Source: Polymyxa betae A26-41
Taxonomy: Eukaryota; Protista; Endomyxa: Phytomyxea
Length of the DNA: 64,000 nt
Direction of reading: 5' to 3'
Assembly: GCA_003693705.1 (NCBI GenBank)
Contig: RBZT01000435.1
Span: 1 to 64,000 of the forward strand
Of the stretch, positions 510 to 59,080 are shown one piece after another (within the stretch, counting starts at the first letter, position 1; every line of letters starts with the position of its first letter). The notes under the pieces were generated by a model that was given only the letters and a program-made list of their open reading frames with translations, did not search any database and was not told the DNA's origin. The position numbers were made by a program, and so were the translations under genes.

Positions 510-1887
510 TTATATGACAATACCAGCTTCCATGAGAGCATTTCTCAGAAGAATTTGAGCGAGTGCCTCAAAGACGACTTGGACATTCTTCGGGTCAGTA
601 TTACATGTGATGTACGTCATGATCGGATTGCTGGCGTTATTTAAATGCGTATTTTCAAATTTTTCTTTGATGAACTGGGCAGCAGATTCTACATCAGCAC
701 CGCCATTGTACTCAGGGAATATCTTTGACAGATCTGAGGTCTTTAACTTCTCCTGGAACAGATCGACTTTGTTCAGGAATAGAATAATTGGGCGATGGAC
801 GAAATAGGCTGGAACCAAAGTTCATTGATTTTTGGAGTTGTTTGCAAAGTGCAACATACGCGAGTTACAAATGTCACCGAATAGGGTCAGCGATTCCACC
901 ATTCGGTTCATTTTATCATCTTCATAGAGCGTTTGATCATATTCGCTGAGAGCGACGACAAAAATGATAGCAGTCACTGAGTCGAAGCAATGAATCCATC
1001 TGAATGTCATATGAAATCGAATGAAGCCGAAAATCGTTGAGACCCACTTCCTCCTCTCGTTCCGTTGTCCGCCCACATCAATAATCCTAAACACAGCGCC
1101 GTGTTTATTTTGGAACTCTCGTTCCACGATCCCAGTCGAAGCCACTCGAATCTGAATGGCCATCAAACGTGCAACTTAACATCAATGACATTGCCCTACC
1201 ATCATGATATCTTCGTTGGTAGGAACAAAGGATTCCGAGACAATCAAGTGGACCTTGTTGAGAAAATAGGAAGCAGAATCATTAAGCTGAAACTGGTTCT
1301 TCCGTTCGTACGCCTTGCGAACAGCAGGATCTGCCCAAGCGACTTCTATCATATCGCCTATCTATTCTCCACTGGTAAGTAAGCAGAATGACCAGATCAT
1401 CGCCAAGGTACGTTCTGGTCTATTCTCGCCAGGTCAACTTCCACATTGAGCAGATAGTTTCTAACGGCTGGGTCCAGTGACGATTGAATTTGAAATTTTT
1501 CAACCGCGTTGAGAAGCACCTAAACAGGATTAAATCCGAATAAGCGAATGGCCTGTTCCAACTGGGCGAACCTTAATACTCAGCAAAGCGTTGGCGAAAA
1601 TATGGGTTTTATATTCCATTCGCTCTTTCATTGAAAACCCGGTCCCATAGATTGTCAACAGTTGTTTTACGAAAGTTGACTTTCCTGATTCACCTGAATC
1701 GCCATAGGTATGAGATCCACATCATGAAATGAGACTACGTCACACCTGTGCCCAAGAGTAGCAGCTTGATAACATTTTGGTCTCTGATTCGACCAATATG
1801 AGATTGGCGATCAATCGAGCGTGAATAGGCGTCCTCGTTCATAGGATGGACCTGCTCCTCCCTGCCAAAGCAGCCACATTGCAGCAT
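510..1887 (-). CDS. Heterotrimeric G protein alpha subunit (multi-exon)
   Basis: KLLLLGTG|ESGKST P-loop, [34 protein letters not shown]; N-terminus MLQCGCF. Confidence 0.95.
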
Positions 1888-2002
1888 TTTTAGACCATGC
1901 AGCGTAACGGAAATGCCCAGACGATGATAGCGAGTGAACCTGGGTGACAATTTTGTACGTAAATCGATCGAAGTACAAGTTGTGCCAAGCATCGCCTTTG
2001 TA

Positions 2003-4439
2003 TTAGGCAATACTAAAAGAGTATAGTCCCTCTTGTTTTAACCACTTCCTCCAATCCATTTTAAATTCCTGAGTTAATGAATGTGGATGTTCAGCGAGCG
2101 CAGCTTCCAGAAACTCGCATTCGCTGGCATTATCTGGGAGTTGATACTAACAAACTCAGCACTTTGCTATTGAGTATAATGCATGAACTTTACCAGTGCA
2201 GGTTTGGAGTCGTCGTGAGATTGTTGAGAGTTGAAAATATGGCAACGTTGCCGGATTGACTATAAACAATAGTCAGTTGTCTTTTTAGCAAGTTGAAAAC
2301 GAAATACTTTAGCCAATGAATTCTCGATCTCTAAAATATCATCAGATGAGGGCTTAGGTTCTAGCCATTTATCAAATAGATCGATTCTAATATGCAGAAA
2401 TATAGCAGAAATGATATCCACATTTTCTAACAAATTTATAAGCAGGCAGACAAAATCGAGTTGACAGGTAACAAACCAGCACGCCATTTTCCATCTGTGA
2501 AAGCTACCTGATTCTTCAGCAGTTTCAATGTATAAATAACTATATCTGATTGTGGGATATCAAGTAGCCTGATGAGGATTTCCTACGAGATTACGTCTCA
2601 GAATTCTAATATTCGAAACAGAATCTTACAGGTGCACGAAACTTTACCAAAGAACGAATCTGTCGCGGGGAGTTCTTGGTTATTTTCTGTAGAATACGGA
2701 GCATATTCAAATATGCTGAATACTTTCTCCAGCAACGCTCATTTAGAGATCCTGATTAATGTCAGGCGAAATCGGAAAATGCGAAGTCTTTAAGCGAAAC
2801 CTTTGGCTCCTTTGATGTACACTATTATCGTGGATTGATCGAGCGACAATAAATTGATTTTAAATAAACTAGAAGCCGTCAGCCAGCATGTTCCAACACG
2901 TCATGACCTTTTCTACCTCAGTGAGGGTATCTCATTTCGTTTGAAAAGTGAAGCAGATAAATTCTGATTGAGAAATTTGAGAATGAGAACCAAAGAGTTT
3001 TTGTCTTGCAGCAAACAGAGAAGTGTGCTGAACTGTAAAGGATGCCCTTTGCGAAATGTCTTCAAAAGGCTAAGAATGATGAAGGAAATATTCTTGGTCA
3101 AAATCTCGGTATGTCGCGAGCGCTCAATACTACTAGATGAGTCTGTGTTGCTTGCTGAAATCTGCAACTCTCGAAAGCCGTTGATCAGTTGCGCGCTCGG
3201 TCGAACATTCGGTGCAATCGACAGAAATACTTTCAGAATGCCGACAACGTACTAGACCATAAATTAAATGACAAAGCATCTGATCATTAAAACTTCCAAG
3301 ACCTTTTGCAAACGCGGATGCAGCAAACGATACAGCATTTCACTGTGATCGACACCTTTGATATTAGGTGGCTGGTCGACTCCCTCACTTAGAATGTCAT
3401 CGGTATCGGCGTATCCGACATGTATGGCATTCCTGGCCATGTTGATTTGTTCAACAAGAGCCGTTGGTGTTCGCGAGAACGTAACCAATTCGATTCCGTT
3501 CAAATGAGCTGAATTCGGAATGCACAGAATTGGACCGAAATGCTCGGCAATATGCTTGCTGATTTGGAATACATCTCGCCTGCGTGATTTGATTTTTTTC
3601 AAGTAATCGTCGCCGAATTTGGAAACTTTTATGCCGCAATCATAGCTCAACAAAGCATGTCGTATCATCATCAGCGCTTTCTTCAACGGAAGCAGATCAG
3701 CGTTATCGGACGAGACCATATCGAGACAAAATACGATTATATGCTTATTGTCAAATAAGTTCAAAGAAAGCATTTCTCTGACCTGTAGCAAAATACATTA
3801 TTTTCCAGGAATTTGATTGAAACTAGACCCGACCTGCGGCTCGTCTGGCAGCAAAATCATGCTGATTAGAAGAATATTAAAGCAGAGCCGAATTTCTCGG
3901 CTGGTGCTATAGAATGCTTCCAAAGATCGATGATCACTTTCAATTAGGTGCAATCTCGCAATAGAAGCCACCGAAGTGCAAAGGCAGCGGATGATATCTG
4001 ATAGTAATCCCAGTCGAATTAAGGCCTGAGATATTCTGCTGCCTTCATGAAGTTTCTCTATTTCAGATCTCTGTCCAACCGCAGCTAACCCCATCATAAA
4101 TACACAGAGCACTTCAGCTGCACAAGATCGCCGATTCTGATCGGCATCTTGCAGCTCACGAAGAAGTAGCTCGAAAACCGAGTTGGTTTTATCCAAATTC
4201 GCGTCGTCCGCTTCCCAGCCCATTCGCTGAATCATCCGACGACCGTTGGCAAGTTCGATAATTTCGATAAACGAGAAAATTTCGGCGAGTTCGTTCGCCA
4301 AAATATCGCGGTCGCGACGAACGAACAGGTCCCGGTCCGGATTACGAACGGAATCGAACGATATGGAGAGGCGCCTGGCCGGCTTCGACGTCAGCTTCAT
4401 GGACAGTGGAGTACCATTCAGGGTACCCGACGACATCAT
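2003..4439 (-). CDS. STRIP1: Striatin-interacting protein STRIP/FAR11 homologue (STRIPAK complex), multi-exon
   Basis: HTEILTKNISFIILSLLKTFRKGHPLQF...LILKFLNQN and ISAIFLHIRIDLFDKW match STRIP1 HKEIIVKAISAVLLLLLKHFK...LILKFFNQN and MSAIYQKVRHRLNDDW; N-terminal ELAEIFSFIE. Confidence 0.8.
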
Positions 4440-4514
4440 GGCAGAGAACTCTCTGGTAGAGACAACCTATCTCAATAATGTGAGACGGAAACCCGCGCCT
4501 GCTTGCTACTGACA

Positions 4515-4622
4515 CCCCATGACCCCATGATGGGCTACAGACCCATGATCTCCATGATGGGCTACAGACCCCATGACCCCATGATGGGCTACAGACCCCA
4601 TGACCCCATGATGGGCTACAGA
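4515..4622 (+). repeat. 27-bp minisatellite, 4 copies (CCCCATGACCCCATGATGGGCTACAGA)
   Basis: Directly visible tandem copies, the second slightly degenerate; ~75 bp upstream of the STRIP start codon. Confidence 0.95.
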
Positions 4623-6332
4623 CACCATAAGGTATTAATCAGACACCTTATCACCATCCTCTATGGGAAACATCATTTCGATCAACAATAATGACACCTC
4701 TACTAGTGCCCCCTTGTCATGTCTGAGCCATCAACGGTTTATCCTGATCCTGAATCTCGTTGGATACCTTTCGTACTTACTTCATTGACAACCATCTTTA
4801 AATTGACAACTATCTTGAATAGCTGCTGAACAGTTATAATTGCATTCTCTGCCCGATTCTGTTCACTCTGCATAATCATTGCTGCATTCCGTCCTGGTTT
4901 CGTTATACATACTCTACATGCTTGTATTGTTTTACGTTGGGATTGCAACAAAATCAGGTTCTCGTCTAATCTGACAGGAGCAATCTTTTACAGCGAAAAT
5001 TTTTAGTGGGCGCCAGTACGACTCGTTTCCTGATTCTGCGATAAACCGTTAAGCCCTCCATGGACACGACGGGCGGGGATCGGCTTTGCAAGGTAGATTG
5101 GGTATCTGAATATCGACGACCGAAATGTGGAGAGAATCGGCGATTTTTGTTTGTCAAAACGTTTTTGGATTGCGCCTTGAAATGAAGCAGGACGGAACGC
5201 TTTGAATCGGATTGCTGATTTGGCGTACAATAACGTTATACGACGAAAATACACTTGTAGCAAGTTTTCATTCGACGGCGACCTACTTAGCTCAATCTCG
5301 ATCATTGTTTTGGGATCCTTGTCGGTTCCTATTGCGGCAGATGGTTGTCGTCGACCTTGATTGCGTTTCCCTCTCTACTCAAGTCTAAAATCGTCTCTTC
5401 TGTGATTAGTGGTGTGTCTTATGATGAATCGGCTAAATTGAATCTATTTCTTCGAAGGTATTGTAATCTTTCGGGTTATGTTTTTTCTCATGGAAAGGCT
5501 AGAATGGTGCTAGCCGGAATTGATTGGGTTCCTACTATCACTGGCGATGGTATCGTCACTTTGGTGGCAATAGCGGCATCCATTGCACTACTCGACATGA
5601 TCTGAGGACCGCCCGGCGTCTGAATGGCATAGCGTTGTTCAGAGATGATCGGCAGGATAACCCGATGAGCTTTAACCTTCAAATGGAAGAGTCTATTGAC
5701 CGGGCGGGCGATTCAGATCCCGGTCCATAAACACGACGAAATCATACATAGCAAAACAAGACGAATTCAAGCAATGGTGTCTTAGAAAAGGTTTCCTGAA
5801 GCGACCAGATTCACTGTATCCGGCCTAAATCATCATGAGATGCAGCAACGGCAGAAGGATTGGAAAATCTACAGTCGATTGTTACATTGCTGCTTATAGT
5901 TGATCTGTGCAATCTCCTTGTCCCAGCTGGAATGTAAATCAAATTCAAGTCTGTTTTCAAGCATTACTCAACAATACACGATGAACAAGAACGAGCAAAA
6001 AGATGCTAATTACGATGAGGGCGGGATCGCATGGAGCTTACAAGCAGCTGACCACATTCAAGCTTCTTCCATCAATCAAACATGACTATACTGTCCATAG
6101 ACGACGCTTTCGGTGGACGAAGGCTTGAGCAAATTCCCAACCCGTCCGTCGAACAGGAATGATATCTCAGTCTTATTGTTGCTATAATAAGAATATGCGA
6201 TATTCATAGCCAAAGTGCTCACGAAGTGCACGATTTTCTGATGCCATCAAATATACATAGCTTTCTTACACCAACTCGAATCGAAGTAGGAAATTGTTTA
6301 TTTGTTCACTTGACAGCGATCTTACAACACGA

Positions 6333-53486: not shown

Positions 53487-54424
53487 ATGCCTTCTTCAAC
53501 CCCGTCAGATCAGGATGTTGAACGTTATCTCAGCAAGACTGGGGTCGGCGTCTTCATACAAGATGCACTCACGCTTATGCTGGAGAACCGACCGGAGCAT
53601 CCGATCCGTTTTCTAGCCGAGTAGTCAGTTGCACGCTAGATGAAGTATTAGCTCTGATAACGACAGCTTCCAGGCGGCAGTCAAACCTGGATCTGCACTT
53701 TCCAGAGGGTACCGGTATATCAGAACGACGCCAAGAAATCGCCCAGCTTTCATGAGCAACTTGGTGTCAGCATTTGTTGTCTTAGACACCAGCAAGAGTA
53801 ATAACTGCTGATTGGCAATACGAAAGAGCTGACGATTTGTCTATTCAGCTGGAACGAAATCCTGTGGACTAACATTCAAGGAGATGCAGAAATTGCTGCG
53901 GCTTCTGGCGAACGATTTTCCAATTGATATTCTGTCTCCGATGATACATGTAAATCGAAGTTTCGTTGAGATATTCAACATTAAACCTAGCTTTAGAGCA
54001 TGAAAATATGTGACTCTGATTTGGTGGATTTCGAGCTGTTTCACTTGTCAGTTGTCGCTGTTTTGGAGTTTGAAGGTATAGTTGTACGGAAGGAGATGAC
54101 AGAAAGTTTCCAACATTAATTTAACAGAGCTGTTTGAAAAATTAGAATGGGTTTTTAAGGGCTATGATCCTGAATCTAGCGGGTATATATCAGGCTCTAT
54201 GCTTAACGAAATTATCGCAATCATGAGAAGGAACGAAAATTTTTGTCAGCAGTATGATTGATTAGCTCACTGAATATTGTCATGACCATTTTGGTAGATG
54301 TATTGACAGGAGTCCGAAGAAACTCTTAGCTGATCTGCCAAAACAAGCGCTATCGTACAAAGAATTCCTAGCTTTAACTCTACAAATATTATCATTTCTT
54401 CCAACGGAATCCACAAAAATATAA
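53487..54424 (+). CDS. TPGS1: Tubulin polyglutamylase complex subunit 1-like
   Basis: YLSKTGV..IQDAL..MLENRPEHPIRFLAEYF (RIIa/DPY-30-like), RPAFMSNLVSAF, GLTFKEM.KLLRLL. Confidence 0.75.
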
Positions 54425-54470
54425 TACAATCTTATTCCTTAATGCATTAAAAAGGCGTATAAACAATAAC

Positions 54471-57400
54471 TTAGAAATTTTCCTAGATAAAATGAGTGAT
54501 TTTTTCTGTGTCCAGGTTCTAGTAAATTACCTTGTGCAAGCGGAAGAAAGTCTTCGTGGTCGAATTGCTCCAGTGCACGCACTGCTCCTTCAGATTCGAA
54601 GCTATCACCGGATTACCACAATATGCGACCCCAATGTCATTAGCGGGATGAGTGTTGGCAACATTTTCGAACTGCTTGCTCCAATCCGGGCGCCCACGAT
54701 GAACATATATGTTCCCAAGCCGTTGCGTCTTTTTAGGTGGACATTGAAGTGCATTGAGCAATTCAATTTCTGTCCATTCTGCGTTGACTAGCACAAGATT
54801 TTCATCGGCATGTAATTTGGAACCCCAGAACTTTACGTCGTCCTCAATCTGTGGATAACGTTAGAACGTATAGTTGATAAGCATCCGAATTACATTGATG
54901 GGTCCGAAAGGCTTACAGTTGTCTGGAGCTGAAGTTACATAAATATGGAACTGGAAAGTCTTGTTGTCGACAAAGTTCTTATTAACAGCCCAAAGATTAT
55001 GCACCTATTCAATGTCAAAGAAACAGAAGGCTCTCAAGTCTCTACAAAACCTCATCATCGGCCTCTTTCAACATACGGATGACCCATCGGAATGAGTTGA
55101 TTTCCTTATGCGAGGTAACAAAGAAGAAATAGACATGATCTGGGTATGAGCGACCAATGCTAAATTTCCACCTGTTCCGAACCATTATTGTCAAGGTAGC
55201 AACATCCTGATGTGGATTGCCTGTAGTGTGCTATATTCTTCATGGTTGCACAAACGGGAGTGACACCGATTCCAGCCCCGATGACCATTGCGATTGAGTA
55301 TTCAGAAACATGTTGGGTTGGGGCTGAGTGTGGGCCGTAAATTCGAAACAACTTCGTCCCATCTGGACCCACAATCTTCACCTGATTAACAGACTTCTAT
55401 TCTAGCTCCGCGCTATTGTACCTTTCCCCTCGTTCCAGATTTATTGTTGCTGTTAGCGAACGAGATGAACGCTGTTTTAACTGGCATTAAAACCGAGCAA
55501 AAATCAGCTAATTTAGCAGTCCAGCTCATTCCATTTTCGGCATCCAGAACTCGAATATGCACAGTGACATCGTTTTCCTGAAATCAACTCAGATAGTAAA
55601 ACAGACTCTGTATGCGCTGCCACCTGCGGAGCAGATGAAATCGTGAAAGGATGCCATTCGCCTCGGGATATGGATGGAGCGTTTAGGTATAAATACTGGC
55701 CTTCTTTATAGCCACTGGGAAAAGCCGACTTACGATCGAAACCAAGAGAAATCACGTTATCTGAAGATATCTCAATGACCGCAATCGAGTTATGGATCAT
55801 CTAACCCATATTGGTAATGGAGGTCAGGGCTACAGTACGGTATGCAGAATATGTACGGTATAGTCGCTCAAGCAAATAAATCGGAATGACGATGATCAAT
55901 GACTTCCACACATTACGATTAAATCCGCCTCGGCCGTGCGGAAGCAGGAAGATAAAGAACCCAATGAAGAAGTGATGTGAATACCAGAAAATCTATGTCG
56001 CCTTGAACTCGCTAGCTAACTGAGTAAATATGACTTACTTCGAAATGAGACCATTTCACATTATGAGGCGCTGCACCATACATGAACATCATGCAGATGA
56101 AAATCGCAACTCCTGTTGTCCAGGGCCAAATTCCGTAGAATTGCCAGGTGTAATCTGGCGACAAACCATAATTGACCAAATGCATGATTGTATGCATAAC
56201 GGCCGCGAATAGCACCATCCAAGCAACAATTTTGTGAAATTCCAAAGCCTTGTCCAATGGGATGAATGCCAGAATGCTACGTAGGAATCGTTGGCCTCGT
56301 GTCTGTCCGTGCGTAAATGCAACAGCGTTCAAAGCGAAATCAAAACGAACCTGCGATTGGGTGGAGTAGTCGTACAAATATCTGATAAACGTTCGACAGA
56401 CAGGTAGGAGAATCAGGCCACAGTTAAAGTCCAGGATGGCTCCCCATGCTTTCGCCCAAGCGACGAACTGTGATGCAGCGAAATCGATAGGCATCTGGTC
56501 GATCTGGTCAAACCTAGGCGCCCGCCGTTGGAACACCGACAATGCAGACAGATATCACCGAACCAGAAGAAGAGAACGAGGAAGAACAGGGCGCCATTGA
56601 TTGCGATCCAAACAGATAATGCCGTCAACTCTCCCACTTTGCCAGGCTCATTGAAATAGAACTTGAGGTTGTCCCACCATCCCTATAAGATCAGTTAACC
56701 CGCAGTGAATTGGGTCGAGTCGGTTCAATTGACATTTGTTGTCTCGACTTTCCGAGTTGCATCCTGTTTCACTTTCCGTTCCTGGACAAACGATTCACTC
56801 TTGGCCGCCGAAACCAGGTGAGCACCGGCAGCGATAATCAGGTGAGCAGCAGCGACTAGTGTGATGATGGAAAAAAGCGCCGGAATCGCCAGTCTGAACC
56901 CAGAGGATCAATCTGCTGCCATTTCGGTTTAGCATTTATCATTACAGGGTATAGATCAAAGCGCGCCAAGGGAAATTTGTCGGCAAACGCCTTGTCCAGC
57001 GCGCTTCGTAGACTGTGATTGCCGATCCAATGATTCTTTTACACTAGTAAGAAACATGAATGACTAAATGCTTAACCTACAGCCCATAGACAGCAAGGAT
57101 GATGTCGCGAGTCGACATGAAGACGGCATCAAGATAAAGCCAATAGAAGATAACAGTGGCGCTCCCAACCATTCCAATAGAACATGCCAGGGTCATGTTA
57201 GACGCCCACATGCCATATCTGGTGGAAGAACTCAAGGGCGCGACGGCCGGGCCAACAATCTCAGGGGCTACAGGTTTTTCGGGTTCCTGAGGGTCCAATA
57301 GTGGTATCGATTGGTTATCTTTAACATTCGTCCTATCAAACGCTGTCGGAGACAATTCGGTAGGAAAATTCTTCTTTGGTCCTGGTGATAAGCGACGATC

Positions 57401-57484
57401 GCAGCTCTGTCGGCGGTCTCGTAGATGTTCTTCGAAGATTAAACTTACTTGATCCTTAACCAGTGAACGCATAGCTTGCGCCAT
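54471..57484 (-). CDS. NADPH oxidase (NOX2/gp91phox-like) with N-terminal fused p22phox-like domain
   Basis: LILLPVCR, FHK...MH and SHH...H heme His pairs, GQY..EWHPFTISSAP (FAD), GAGIGVTP, GRPDW, YCG, HK|ENF*; upstream exons resemble CYBA. Confidence 0.9.
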
Positions 57485-57666
57485 TACGAAGCCAGGTTCG
57501 TAAATGAGTCGTCTAGCGTTTTTGTGCCGGCAACAAGACCAGTGTTTCTAGAACGTCCTAGATTTTAGTGATTGATAAATTAGGAGTAAGGACATTCTCA
57601 TCTTTCTCGAAATGAGTGCATATTAACTAAGTTATAGTGGCAGGTGATGTTGAAAGAGAACATGCT

Positions 57667-58645
57667 TCAGCAATGTGACAGAGTAGGACCACACGAAATG
57701 CCCAAAATAAGGTACAGAACCGCCTATGACGCAATTGAAAAACAACAGTGTTATTGTTGAAAAAGGCACTCACCAATACGCCAAAGCCTCCTAATGCAAA
57801 CAATTTAGCGTTCTTCCACCATAAGGATCTAGTAATGAGGTTATAAATTGATCAGTACAAAGTACACTTTGATGTGCGGAAACCTCTTAAGTCTCGTCGA
57901 CCTCTTCTTAAACTGTAAAGCGCTTGCATCCAGTTGATCAGACTTGTCCACTAAAAGCTCTACAGATAATAAACATCTATTATCACTATGATTGAGGGGT
58001 AACATACCGATTTTATCACCGCGTTCCAGTACTCGATCAATGTTATCAGCCTTCGTATCATGTCATGAAAAAGATGACAAAAAATGTGTAGCTTTTACCA
58101 TCACATTCCTTGCCTGGGATAATTCGGTTTGTACGGCGCTCAATTTCGACGGGTTATACTTTGCATTGTTGTAATAATCCATTCTGGATTGTAGAATAGT
58201 GGAGAATTCAGAATTGAAAGAATAGGCTATCGCTGTATTGGCGGATGCTCCATATGCAGCTAGAACCCATGGTTGGATAGTAAATCATACCAACTATTTT
58301 TTAATTTACCTGAAAACCGCAGTTTCACATCTTCCAAGAAATCGAAGGGAATCTGATTGCCAAAATTTTCATCGGCCATGCAAAGATATATCAGATTTTT
58401 GACAACAATATAGTGAAACTGATATCTATACAAAGCAGTCAAATGAACAGCTTCGAACGAGATGACAGAGACAACCCATCAAGCATATAGGACGCACGAT
58501 CCTGCTCGGGATCGATCCTTGCCAGGAGGACTCTGGTGACCTGGGCGAAATTCCCAGCCAGTCCATGTGGGATGTATTCGGCGAGAACGTCGGTGCCTCG
58601 CGCGACCAATGCATAAAGGATGCCGCCTTGCTGAGGGATAGCCAT
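57667..58645 (-). CDS. VAMP7: Longin R-SNARE VAMP7
   Basis: ILYALVARGTDVLAEY longin domain, YLCMADE, NIDRVLERGDKI|ELLVDKS, C-terminal TM. Confidence 0.92.
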
Positions 58646-59080
58646 ATTCAAATGAGTTTATCAAAGTATTCACTTTAGTATGGCATCGGACATTTTTTCA
58701 CAGCCCTTAAATTGAAAGCTGCATCAATGGGCTCCATTGTTTATTCGGGCTGTCTGAACAAGGCGATTCAATTAGAAGCGGCTGCTGCGACCCGTTTCAG
58801 TTTAATGTCTCAGAGTGGGCAGCCGGCAACTTTTGGGCAGTTTCCTGGTTTCGTCACGGATTGGCGAGGATCTTACACTTTCTTCCATTCTTTTCAGCCG
58901 TTTTGTTCTTTTTGCAATTGCAATGCTGGATAAAAATGCCTTCGCCTTCATTTCGCCACAGTAAAATCGGTTTTGGAGTTTTCCTGACTACCTATAGTCC
59001 TATACGGAGTGCGGAGTCTCATTTTGATTTAAAGAGACATTTTCAGGGACGTCTGCCGATATCAGGCTGTTTAATCAGTA

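Follow-up and report, generated by a model that had tools for sequence, protein, structure and literature searches.

A NADPH oxidase gene of Polymyxa betae that encodes an in-frame N-terminal four-transmembrane domain, a likely p22phox homolog

This study examined a 64,000-nucleotide (nt) stretch of the genome of Polymyxa betae A26-41 (contig RBZT01000435.1, positions 1 to 64,000; hereafter the window), in which a minus-strand gene joins a domain of four predicted transmembrane (TM) helices in frame to an NADPH oxidase (NOX). The in-frame fusion is real and forms one gene, since spliced contigs resembling complementary DNA (cDNA) support it and four genes share the in-frame layout. The encoded polypeptide of 798 amino acids (aa) is probably composed of a diverged p22phox homolog (CYBA/NoxD) that leads, through a linker of about 36 residues, into the cytosolic N-terminus of a NOX without EF-hands. 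In animals and fungi, p22phox is a separate subunit on which these superoxide-producing oxidases depend. Homology of the four-TM domain to p22phox, as judged from its sequence, is likely, not proven, and we rate its role as a membrane partner module acting on the NOX in cis higher than the homology itself.

Gene structure and transcript evidence

Three-frame reading and exon joining resolved the gene (57484-54471, minus strand) into 14 exons with a coding sequence (CDS) of 2,397 nt, which gives an open reading frame (ORF) of 798 aa plus the stop codon. The start ATG lies at 57484 and the stop codon at 54473-54471, and the protein ends in HKENF.

54471..57484, minus strand: whole CDS, an uninterrupted 798-aa ORF, with 13 of 13 introns skipped in the cDNA-like contigs of runs X1 and X4
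57484-57081, 57035-56946, 56893-56734, 56682-56564, 56513-56351, minus strand: exons 1-5
56302-56039, 55992-55806, 55760-55624, 55577-55422, 55375-55221, minus strand: exons 6-10
55171-55051, 55004-54894, 54848-54531, 54482-54471, minus strand: exons 11-14
56683..56733, minus strand: linker intron, 51 nt, phase 0, GTCAAT..TATAG, whose removal fuses two reading frames

All 13 introns are short (45-52 nt). The intron at 55220-55172 (49 nt) is best read as GC-AG, and that at 56350-56303 (48 nt) is in frame and free of stops, so that plain ORF scanning passes over it; both are removed in the cDNA-like contigs. Past the GT, donor sites are poorly conserved in this genome (GTCAAT, GTTCGG, GTAGGT).

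The original prediction, made from the sequence of the window, stated that three upstream exons splice in frame to peptides that it quoted and that a 51-nt, phase-0, GT-AG intron (56733-56683) then joins them in frame to the start of the NOX; both statements were borne out, the exons being those at 57484-57081, 57035-56946 and 56893-56734. Splicing of the linker intron joins ...VETTN to GWWDNLKFYFNEPGK. When this intron is kept in, the upstream frame ends after 2 codons (VN, then TGA), and the NOX frame is closed upstream by the TAG of the intron acceptor. The NOX part has, as predicted, no in-frame ATG before its first TM helix (TM1), the earliest in-frame Met being located downstream of it. 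Because the retained intron stops the upstream frame and the acceptor TAG closes the NOX frame, the NOX obtains an initiation codon only via splicing.

Transcript evidence was drawn from four small public runs of one study, which contain 67% of the sampled words of the 64-kb stretch, and the contigs of two of these runs (X1 and X4) were aligned to 54200-57900. In each of the two runs, one contig spans the gene and leaves out precisely the 13 introns that were predicted, with CT..AC borders on the plus strand. The linker intron 56733-56683, at which splicing had been proposed as a check of the fusion, is skipped in both (joint 56733/56681, 51 nt). As the contigs skip all 13 introns at exact borders, they are cDNA-like, and the fused frame therefore exists as a spliced, in-frame mRNA form. 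The four-TM domain is thus covalently tied to the NOX by a single ORF with a spliced mRNA form.

The transcript support comes from a single study, and assembled contigs conceal rare isoforms. It weighs against the reading as one fused product that the contigs extend over the adjoining genes, which leaves transcript ends undefined, and that contigs cannot reveal the protein. The raw-read RNA runs X9 and X19 yielded zero reads from the organism and hence no information on transcript ends.

One cDNA-like contig spans the gene together with an upstream longin-SNARE gene and a downstream plus-strand gene (window 54251-54298, 57722-57773). The intergenic spacers around the gene are shorter than 200 nt; either the transcripts overlap or the assemblies made from them do.

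Conservation of the fused layout

The window genome (27 Mb, 1,001 contigs) was searched with exon 6 and with the part of exon 1 that encodes the first two helices (M1-M2) of the four-TM domain. Both query pieces were found at a second locus, on contig C824, about 1 kb apart and on one strand, and related genes were found in other organisms.

C824 (L005 ~1530-4980), minus strand: paralog with SH3, p22-like four-TM domain and NOX; Pfam SH3 E 2.9e-8
L006 5891-9000: syntenic ortholog in a GC-rich relative (59% GC), from Logan contigs, reached via the fragment P0002
L011 1-1241: fourth gene, on a GC-rich contig of another run; p22-like exons, then NOX exons
C968 (L008 3362-6114), plus strand: DOMON ferric reductase with signal peptide, DOMON, Ferric_reduct, FAD_binding_8 and NAD_binding_6

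In the paralog, the entire four-TM domain lies within one 255-aa open frame (L005:3779-4543), with a hidden in-frame GT-AG intron of 48 nt in the M2-M3 loop (L005 4239-4192), and the domain is connected in frame with the NOX exons across a GT-AG linker intron of about 49-64 nt that begins with GTCAAC. The ortholog L006 has the order SH3 (Pfam 6.5e-10), p22-like exons, in-frame linker intron and NOX; it is 68% identical to the window protein over 727 columns, and its p22-like exons carry introns at the same two phase-2 positions as the window gene. Upstream of the NOX, L006 has a longin SNARE gene, as the window does (58260-58651). By this comparison of sequences, the fusion is older than the paralog duplication and at least one speciation.

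L011 has an additional intron inside its TRFG/IWATN motif. The N-terminal module varies between orthologs, with SH3 in L006 and none detectable in the window copy.

These comparisons bear on two other accounts of the locus. An assembly or annotation artefact, either a chimeric contig or read-through between neighbouring genes, might be considered, given that the cDNA contig also covers the neighbouring genes and contig continuity consequently means little; yet the same order occurs at two loci of the genome and in two independent assemblies of other organisms, and the exons are joined exactly, in frame and at GT-AG borders, which makes an artefact extremely improbable. It is also very unlikely, if less so, that the locus yields two proteins, namely a free p22-like protein through retention of the linker intron, or a NOX from an internal promoter or start, with the fused ORF being minor or non-translated. 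Such an arrangement would agree with the immediate TGA produced by retention of 56733-56683 and with the fact that contigs lose rare variants and show no transcript ends. Against this, the spliced form alone is present in X1 and X4, no Met precedes TM1 in the NOX part, and the paralog and the ortholog retain the in-frame junction, with read-through of the intron running for at least 28 codons there. As only the window copy meets an immediate stop on retention of the linker intron, and the at least 28 codons of read-through in the paralog and ortholog lack one, a conserved splicing switch between fused and free p22 is unsupported.

The reading as a single fused gene also fits the distribution of the domain. 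Apart from the NOX genes, a single gene of the ferric-reductase family was identified in the genome, the DOMON ferric reductase on C968, and it has no p22-like domain. Its type, a ferric reductase with DOMON, is known from Naegleria and from oomycetes. Since the four-TM domain is present on both NOX genes and absent from the DOMON ferric reductase, it travels with NOX-type genes only. A six-frame scan of the window genome with PF05038, the p22phox family of Pfam, found no free p22phox. A fourth, weak NAD_binding_6 match (24.8 bits) was seen on contig C598.

When exon 1 was searched with HMMER against 1.8 billion representatives, the matches were confined to three short, exon-level pieces from relatives (P0001, P0002 and P0004) and one spurious repeat protein, with neither a canonical p22phox nor a full-length fused protein among them. 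A metagenome scan with the M1 motif gave no match. A word-seeded search with the paralog domain returned only the beet-assembly sequence KMS64814.1. This hypothetical protein of 115 aa (P0005, NCBI 'Beta vulgaris' BVRB_042390), encoded on a contig of 519 bp, matches part of the paralog with 100% identity and most probably reflects contamination of the beet assembly by this parasite, in keeping with Polymyxa betae.

The NOX part

Residues 237-798 carry three NOX Pfam domains in order (Ferric_reduct, FAD_binding_8 and NAD_binding_6), the first two identified exon by exon and the third in a six-frame genome scan.

55858..56628, minus strand: NOX six-TM ferric-reductase domain, aa 237-445; PF01794 E 5.5e-8; PDB matches csNOX5, NOX2, DUOX1 and NOX5
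55422..55857, minus strand: FAD-binding domain, aa 446-560; HPFT at aa 499; PF08022 E 7e-9
54474..55375, minus strand: NADPH-binding domain, aa 561-798; PF08030 E 3.3e-10; GAGIGVTP at 593, CGNP at 766, C-terminal HKENF

The four haem histidines, H335/H349 (spacing 14) and H406/H419 (spacing 13), have the spacing of H101/H115 and H209/H222, the haem histidines of human NOX2 (PMC3591440). Pfam gave no EF-hand family match in exons 1-4 at E<=10, in keeping with the EF-hand-less oxidase that had been proposed. By these sequence criteria, residues 237-798 constitute a canonical NOX. On its designation as NOX2-type, the PDB ranking is divided: the dehydrogenase exon has its best match in the NOX2 dehydrogenase domain, whereas the best match of the TM exon is csNOX5.

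Relationship of the four-TM domain to p22phox

56788..57220, minus strand: p22phox-like four-TM domain, aa 89-200, interrupted by the introns 57080-57036 and 56945-56894
56629..56787, minus strand: cytosolic linker, aa 201-236 (VQERKVKQDATRKVETTN / GWWDNLKFYFNEPGKVGE), across the linker intron

By hydropathy, hydrophobic segments lie near 98-118, 120-146 and 157-195, and the third of them would hold two helices. As NOX TM1 starts on the cytosolic side, the number of TM helices leading up to it would have to be even. Between the fourth helix (M4) and TM1 lie about 36 aa of basic linker; the original prediction had already described a basic linker there. Polar residues of the domain with conservation across three genes are N96, E145, R159, Y163, H190 and E198.

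The first line of evidence for homology to p22phox was obtained with exon 3 (53 aa), which has exactly three matches among 177,635 distinct PDB sequences, all of them the cytochrome b-245 light chain (7u8g_B, 8gz3_A and 8kei_A). The alignment has E 0.23 and 15.4 bits and runs without gaps through 36 columns, 13 of them identical, covering p22 residues 97-132. As a test of one candidate named beforehand, namely the partner of the enzyme to which the domain is fused, this E value corresponds to about 1e-6 per sequence, or about 1e-5 when the roughly nine pieces tried are allowed for. Among 9 columns that are invariant in three plasmodiophorid sequences, 5 (L, P, F, T and E) are identical in human p22.

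The second line concerns the caged polar network of human p22, formed by N11 (M1), E53 (M2), R90 and H94 (M3) and Y121 (M4), which is conserved and hit by mutations of chronic granulomatous disease (PMC9711523). The exon 3 alignment with the PDB entries sets the register, in which p22 residue n equals window residue n+69; outside p22 97-132, the numbering of PMC9711523 and topology were used. In this register, R90 is R159 and E129 is E198, whereas H94 becomes Y163 and Y121 becomes H190, and the spacings of 4 and 27 are identical; R159 is encoded by the exon preceding exon 3. At the three positions R90/H94/Y121, L006 and L011 have R/Y/H and the paralog has R/Y/N, and the spacing R-x3-[H/Y]-x26-[Y/H/N] found in all homologs equals that of p22. 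M2 closes with a conserved E (YEARW / FETRW), and M1 contains a conserved N (WA[ST]NM), both placed by topology only. The M3-M4 hairpin, unusually short in both proteins, has 38 residues as delimited by the basic residues at its flanks, R159...K196 as compared with R90...R127 in p22.

The third line is a language-model feature search with the paralog domain, in which the named cluster at rank 1 was Cytochrome b-245 light chain, PF05038 (0.89, 203/256 features).

Several results weigh against this homology. The E of 0.23 is not significant database-wide, and TM composition inflates such scores somewhat. PF05038 gave no match at E<=10 for exons 1-3 singly or for the whole domain of the paralog, so the profile check suggested for the original prediction was negative with these queries, and the four-TM domain does not appear to be a member of the family as curated. 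No p22phox emerged from the PDB in phmmer/hmmsearch runs with exon 1, the complete paralog domain, the C-terminal half of that domain, exon 3 of L006, exon 3 of L011, or the family profiles A3 and A4; the alignments A1, A2 and A5 (paralog domain plus exon fragments) were excluded from folding and profiles, as MAFFT had misplaced the fragments. The language-model score is below 0.9, with the four-TM clusters 'flower' and TMEM72 close behind, which makes it a lead only, and the same search with the window exon-1 fragment gave no usable match. A single-sequence AlphaFold model of the paralog domain has four helices with a predicted local distance difference test score (pLDDT) of 55, and its Foldseek matches are generic helical bundles, which are meaningless. 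The M2-M3 loop is short and carries neither the amphipathic helix of intracellular loop 1 (ICL1) nor a polybasic region. There is no C-terminal proline-rich region, the p22phox site that docks the SH3 domains of p47phox/NOXO1; the proline-rich sequence is N-terminal instead. The residue types of the polar network are partly swapped, Y and H standing for H94 and Y121. The M1 asparagine is one residue off the human WAN motif; the original prediction cited the strings WAN, LEYPRG and NYYVR for human p22phox.

The original prediction's reading of the N-terminal domain as p22phox thus has partial support, which comes from the exon 3 match in the PDB, the polar register and the first rank in the language-model search, and none from Pfam PF05038, the three homologs or the two family profiles.

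The fusion could also be real with a four-TM domain that is no homolog of p22phox, being an unrelated or convergent membrane module, whether or not it occupies the p22 site. This module might be likened to the extra N-terminal TM helices of protist and plant ferric reductases or to M0 of DUOX. The missing PF05038 match, the failure of the family profiles and of three of the four exon-3-type segments to reach p22phox, and a sole p22phox match at E 0.23 between TM segments rich in Ala, Leu and Ile would all agree with such a module, and additional N-terminal TM regions are common in the ferric reductase domain superfamily (PMC3591440). We nevertheless consider it unlikely, since the only PDB matches of exon 3 among the 177,635 sequences are three p22phox entries, aligned at the topologically equivalent place and gapless over the 38-residue hairpin, and since the R90/H94/Y121 spacing is kept in all homologs, an independent language-model method also puts p22phox first, and the domain occurs on NOX-type genes only and not on the ferric reductase.

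Comparison with known systems and proposed mechanism

The gene resembles human flavocytochrome b558 (NOX2-p22phox; 7U8G, 8GZ3) in its six-TM NOX, haem spacing, FAD/NADPH motifs and C-terminal ...KENF, and it resembles p22phox in the predicted four-TM unit, the short M3-M4 hairpin, the polar residues at the putative R90/H94/Y121/E129 positions, the E at the end of M2 and the N in M1. Human b558 is encoded by two genes, whereas the Polymyxa betae gene encodes one polypeptide. Human p22phox has an ICL1 helix, a polybasic region and a C-terminal proline-rich tail, in contrast to the short M2-M3 loop of the Polymyxa betae domain and a tail that is the linker. The Polymyxa betae domain further differs in the swap of H94/Y121 to Y/H, in a longer M1-M2 spacing and in an 88-aa N-terminal extension.

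Fungal NoxA-NoxD and Dictyostelium NoxA-CybA are alike in that a NOX of microbial eukaryotes without EF-hands has as its partner a p22phox-like protein of the membrane, so diverged in sequence that it is hard to recognise; the Dictyostelium p22phox-like protein departs from 24 of 38 conserved p22 residues (PMC2121648). In these systems, unlike in Polymyxa betae, the partner is encoded by a separate gene. M0 of DUOX1 is an extra N-terminal TM element that lies in cis at the p22 position on the NOX core and is linked to regulatory modules (PMC9711523), but it is a single helix rather than a four-helix bundle and is attached to a peroxidase-like ectodomain and EF-hands. The NOX of Naegleria gruberi is a protist NOX with SH3 in cis, as in the paralog and ortholog; its SH3 lies within the NADPH-binding domain and not at the N-terminus, and no p22-like domain is reported (PMC3591440).

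In the human complex, M1 and M4 of p22 contact M3-M5 of NOX2, a site that M0 of DUOX1 uses in cis (PMC9711523). With four helices and both ends cytosolic, the C-terminus of the Polymyxa betae domain would reach the cytosolic start of NOX TM1 via the linker of about 36 residues, and the N-terminal bundle may pack in cis on the NOX membrane domain, like M1/M4 of p22 on M3-M5 of NOX2. The bundle so packed would stabilise the haem-loaded oxidase, and a separately encoded partner would no longer be needed.

A 2013 survey of ferric-reductase-domain architectures described SH3 and other additions without a p22 fusion and gave the origin of p22phox as unknown (PMC3591440), and a 2022 survey found p22phox, p47phox and p67phox restricted to opisthokonts (PMC9421330). 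Full-text searches of the literature library used here found no natural p22phox-NOX fusion, in line with the original prediction, whose author knew of no described one. A natural fusion would provide "Rosetta stone" genomic evidence for a single functional unit made up of an EF-hand-less NOX and a four-TM partner of the p22 type, and this evidence comes from Rhizaria, far from animals and fungi. A rhizarian p22-like domain, if true, would push back the origin of p22phox or reveal convergence. A single-chain cytochrome b558 would also ease expression, structural study and assay through fixed stoichiometry without co-expression. [quoted passage not shown]

The N-terminal module and regulation of assembly

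57221..57484, minus strand: N-terminal cytosolic extension, aa 1-88, 11 prolines (PLLDPQEPEKPVAPEIVGPAVAP)

The N-terminus may serve as a docking module, as it holds SH3 in the paralog and ortholog and a proline-rich stretch (11 prolines in 88 aa) in the window copy. Neither Pfam nor BLASTP against the SH3 of the relatives found SH3 in the N-terminal extension of the window copy. A decayed SH3 at this place was considered and rejected, neither method backing it.

Docking through a C-terminal tail, as in p22phox, is impossible here because the tail became the linker, and the docking role of the proline-rich tail may have shifted to the free N-terminus. The N-terminal SH3 of the paralog and ortholog implies partners, and the "self-contained" oxidase of the original prediction is therefore doubtful; these features favour an enzyme that assembles with partners under regulation over one that is entirely self-contained. 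The SH3 and proline-rich variants of the N-terminus would offer a simple system for the regulation of NOX by organiser contacts.

A broader scenario that joins these points can be put forward tentatively, and we hold it to be possible at best. p22phox would be older and more broadly distributed than in the surveys, which place it in opisthokonts and perhaps Amoebozoa, and the plasmodiophorids would have merged an organiser-type SH3, p22 and the NOX core in one chain. The window copy would then have lost its SH3 but retained a proline-rich N-terminus, to which the paralog's SH3 could bind in trans, and the pair would make a two-gene, self-organising oxidase without subunits of the p47/p67 type.

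A PB1 search of the genome for a p67phox/NoxR-like gene, a quick look only, gave two PB1 genes, neither with a TPR...PB1 arrangement. The locus L010 (contig C1 168819-171968, minus strand) has an N-terminal PB1, a TM segment and downstream TPR-like repeats, an unusual architecture that is not p67phox-like.

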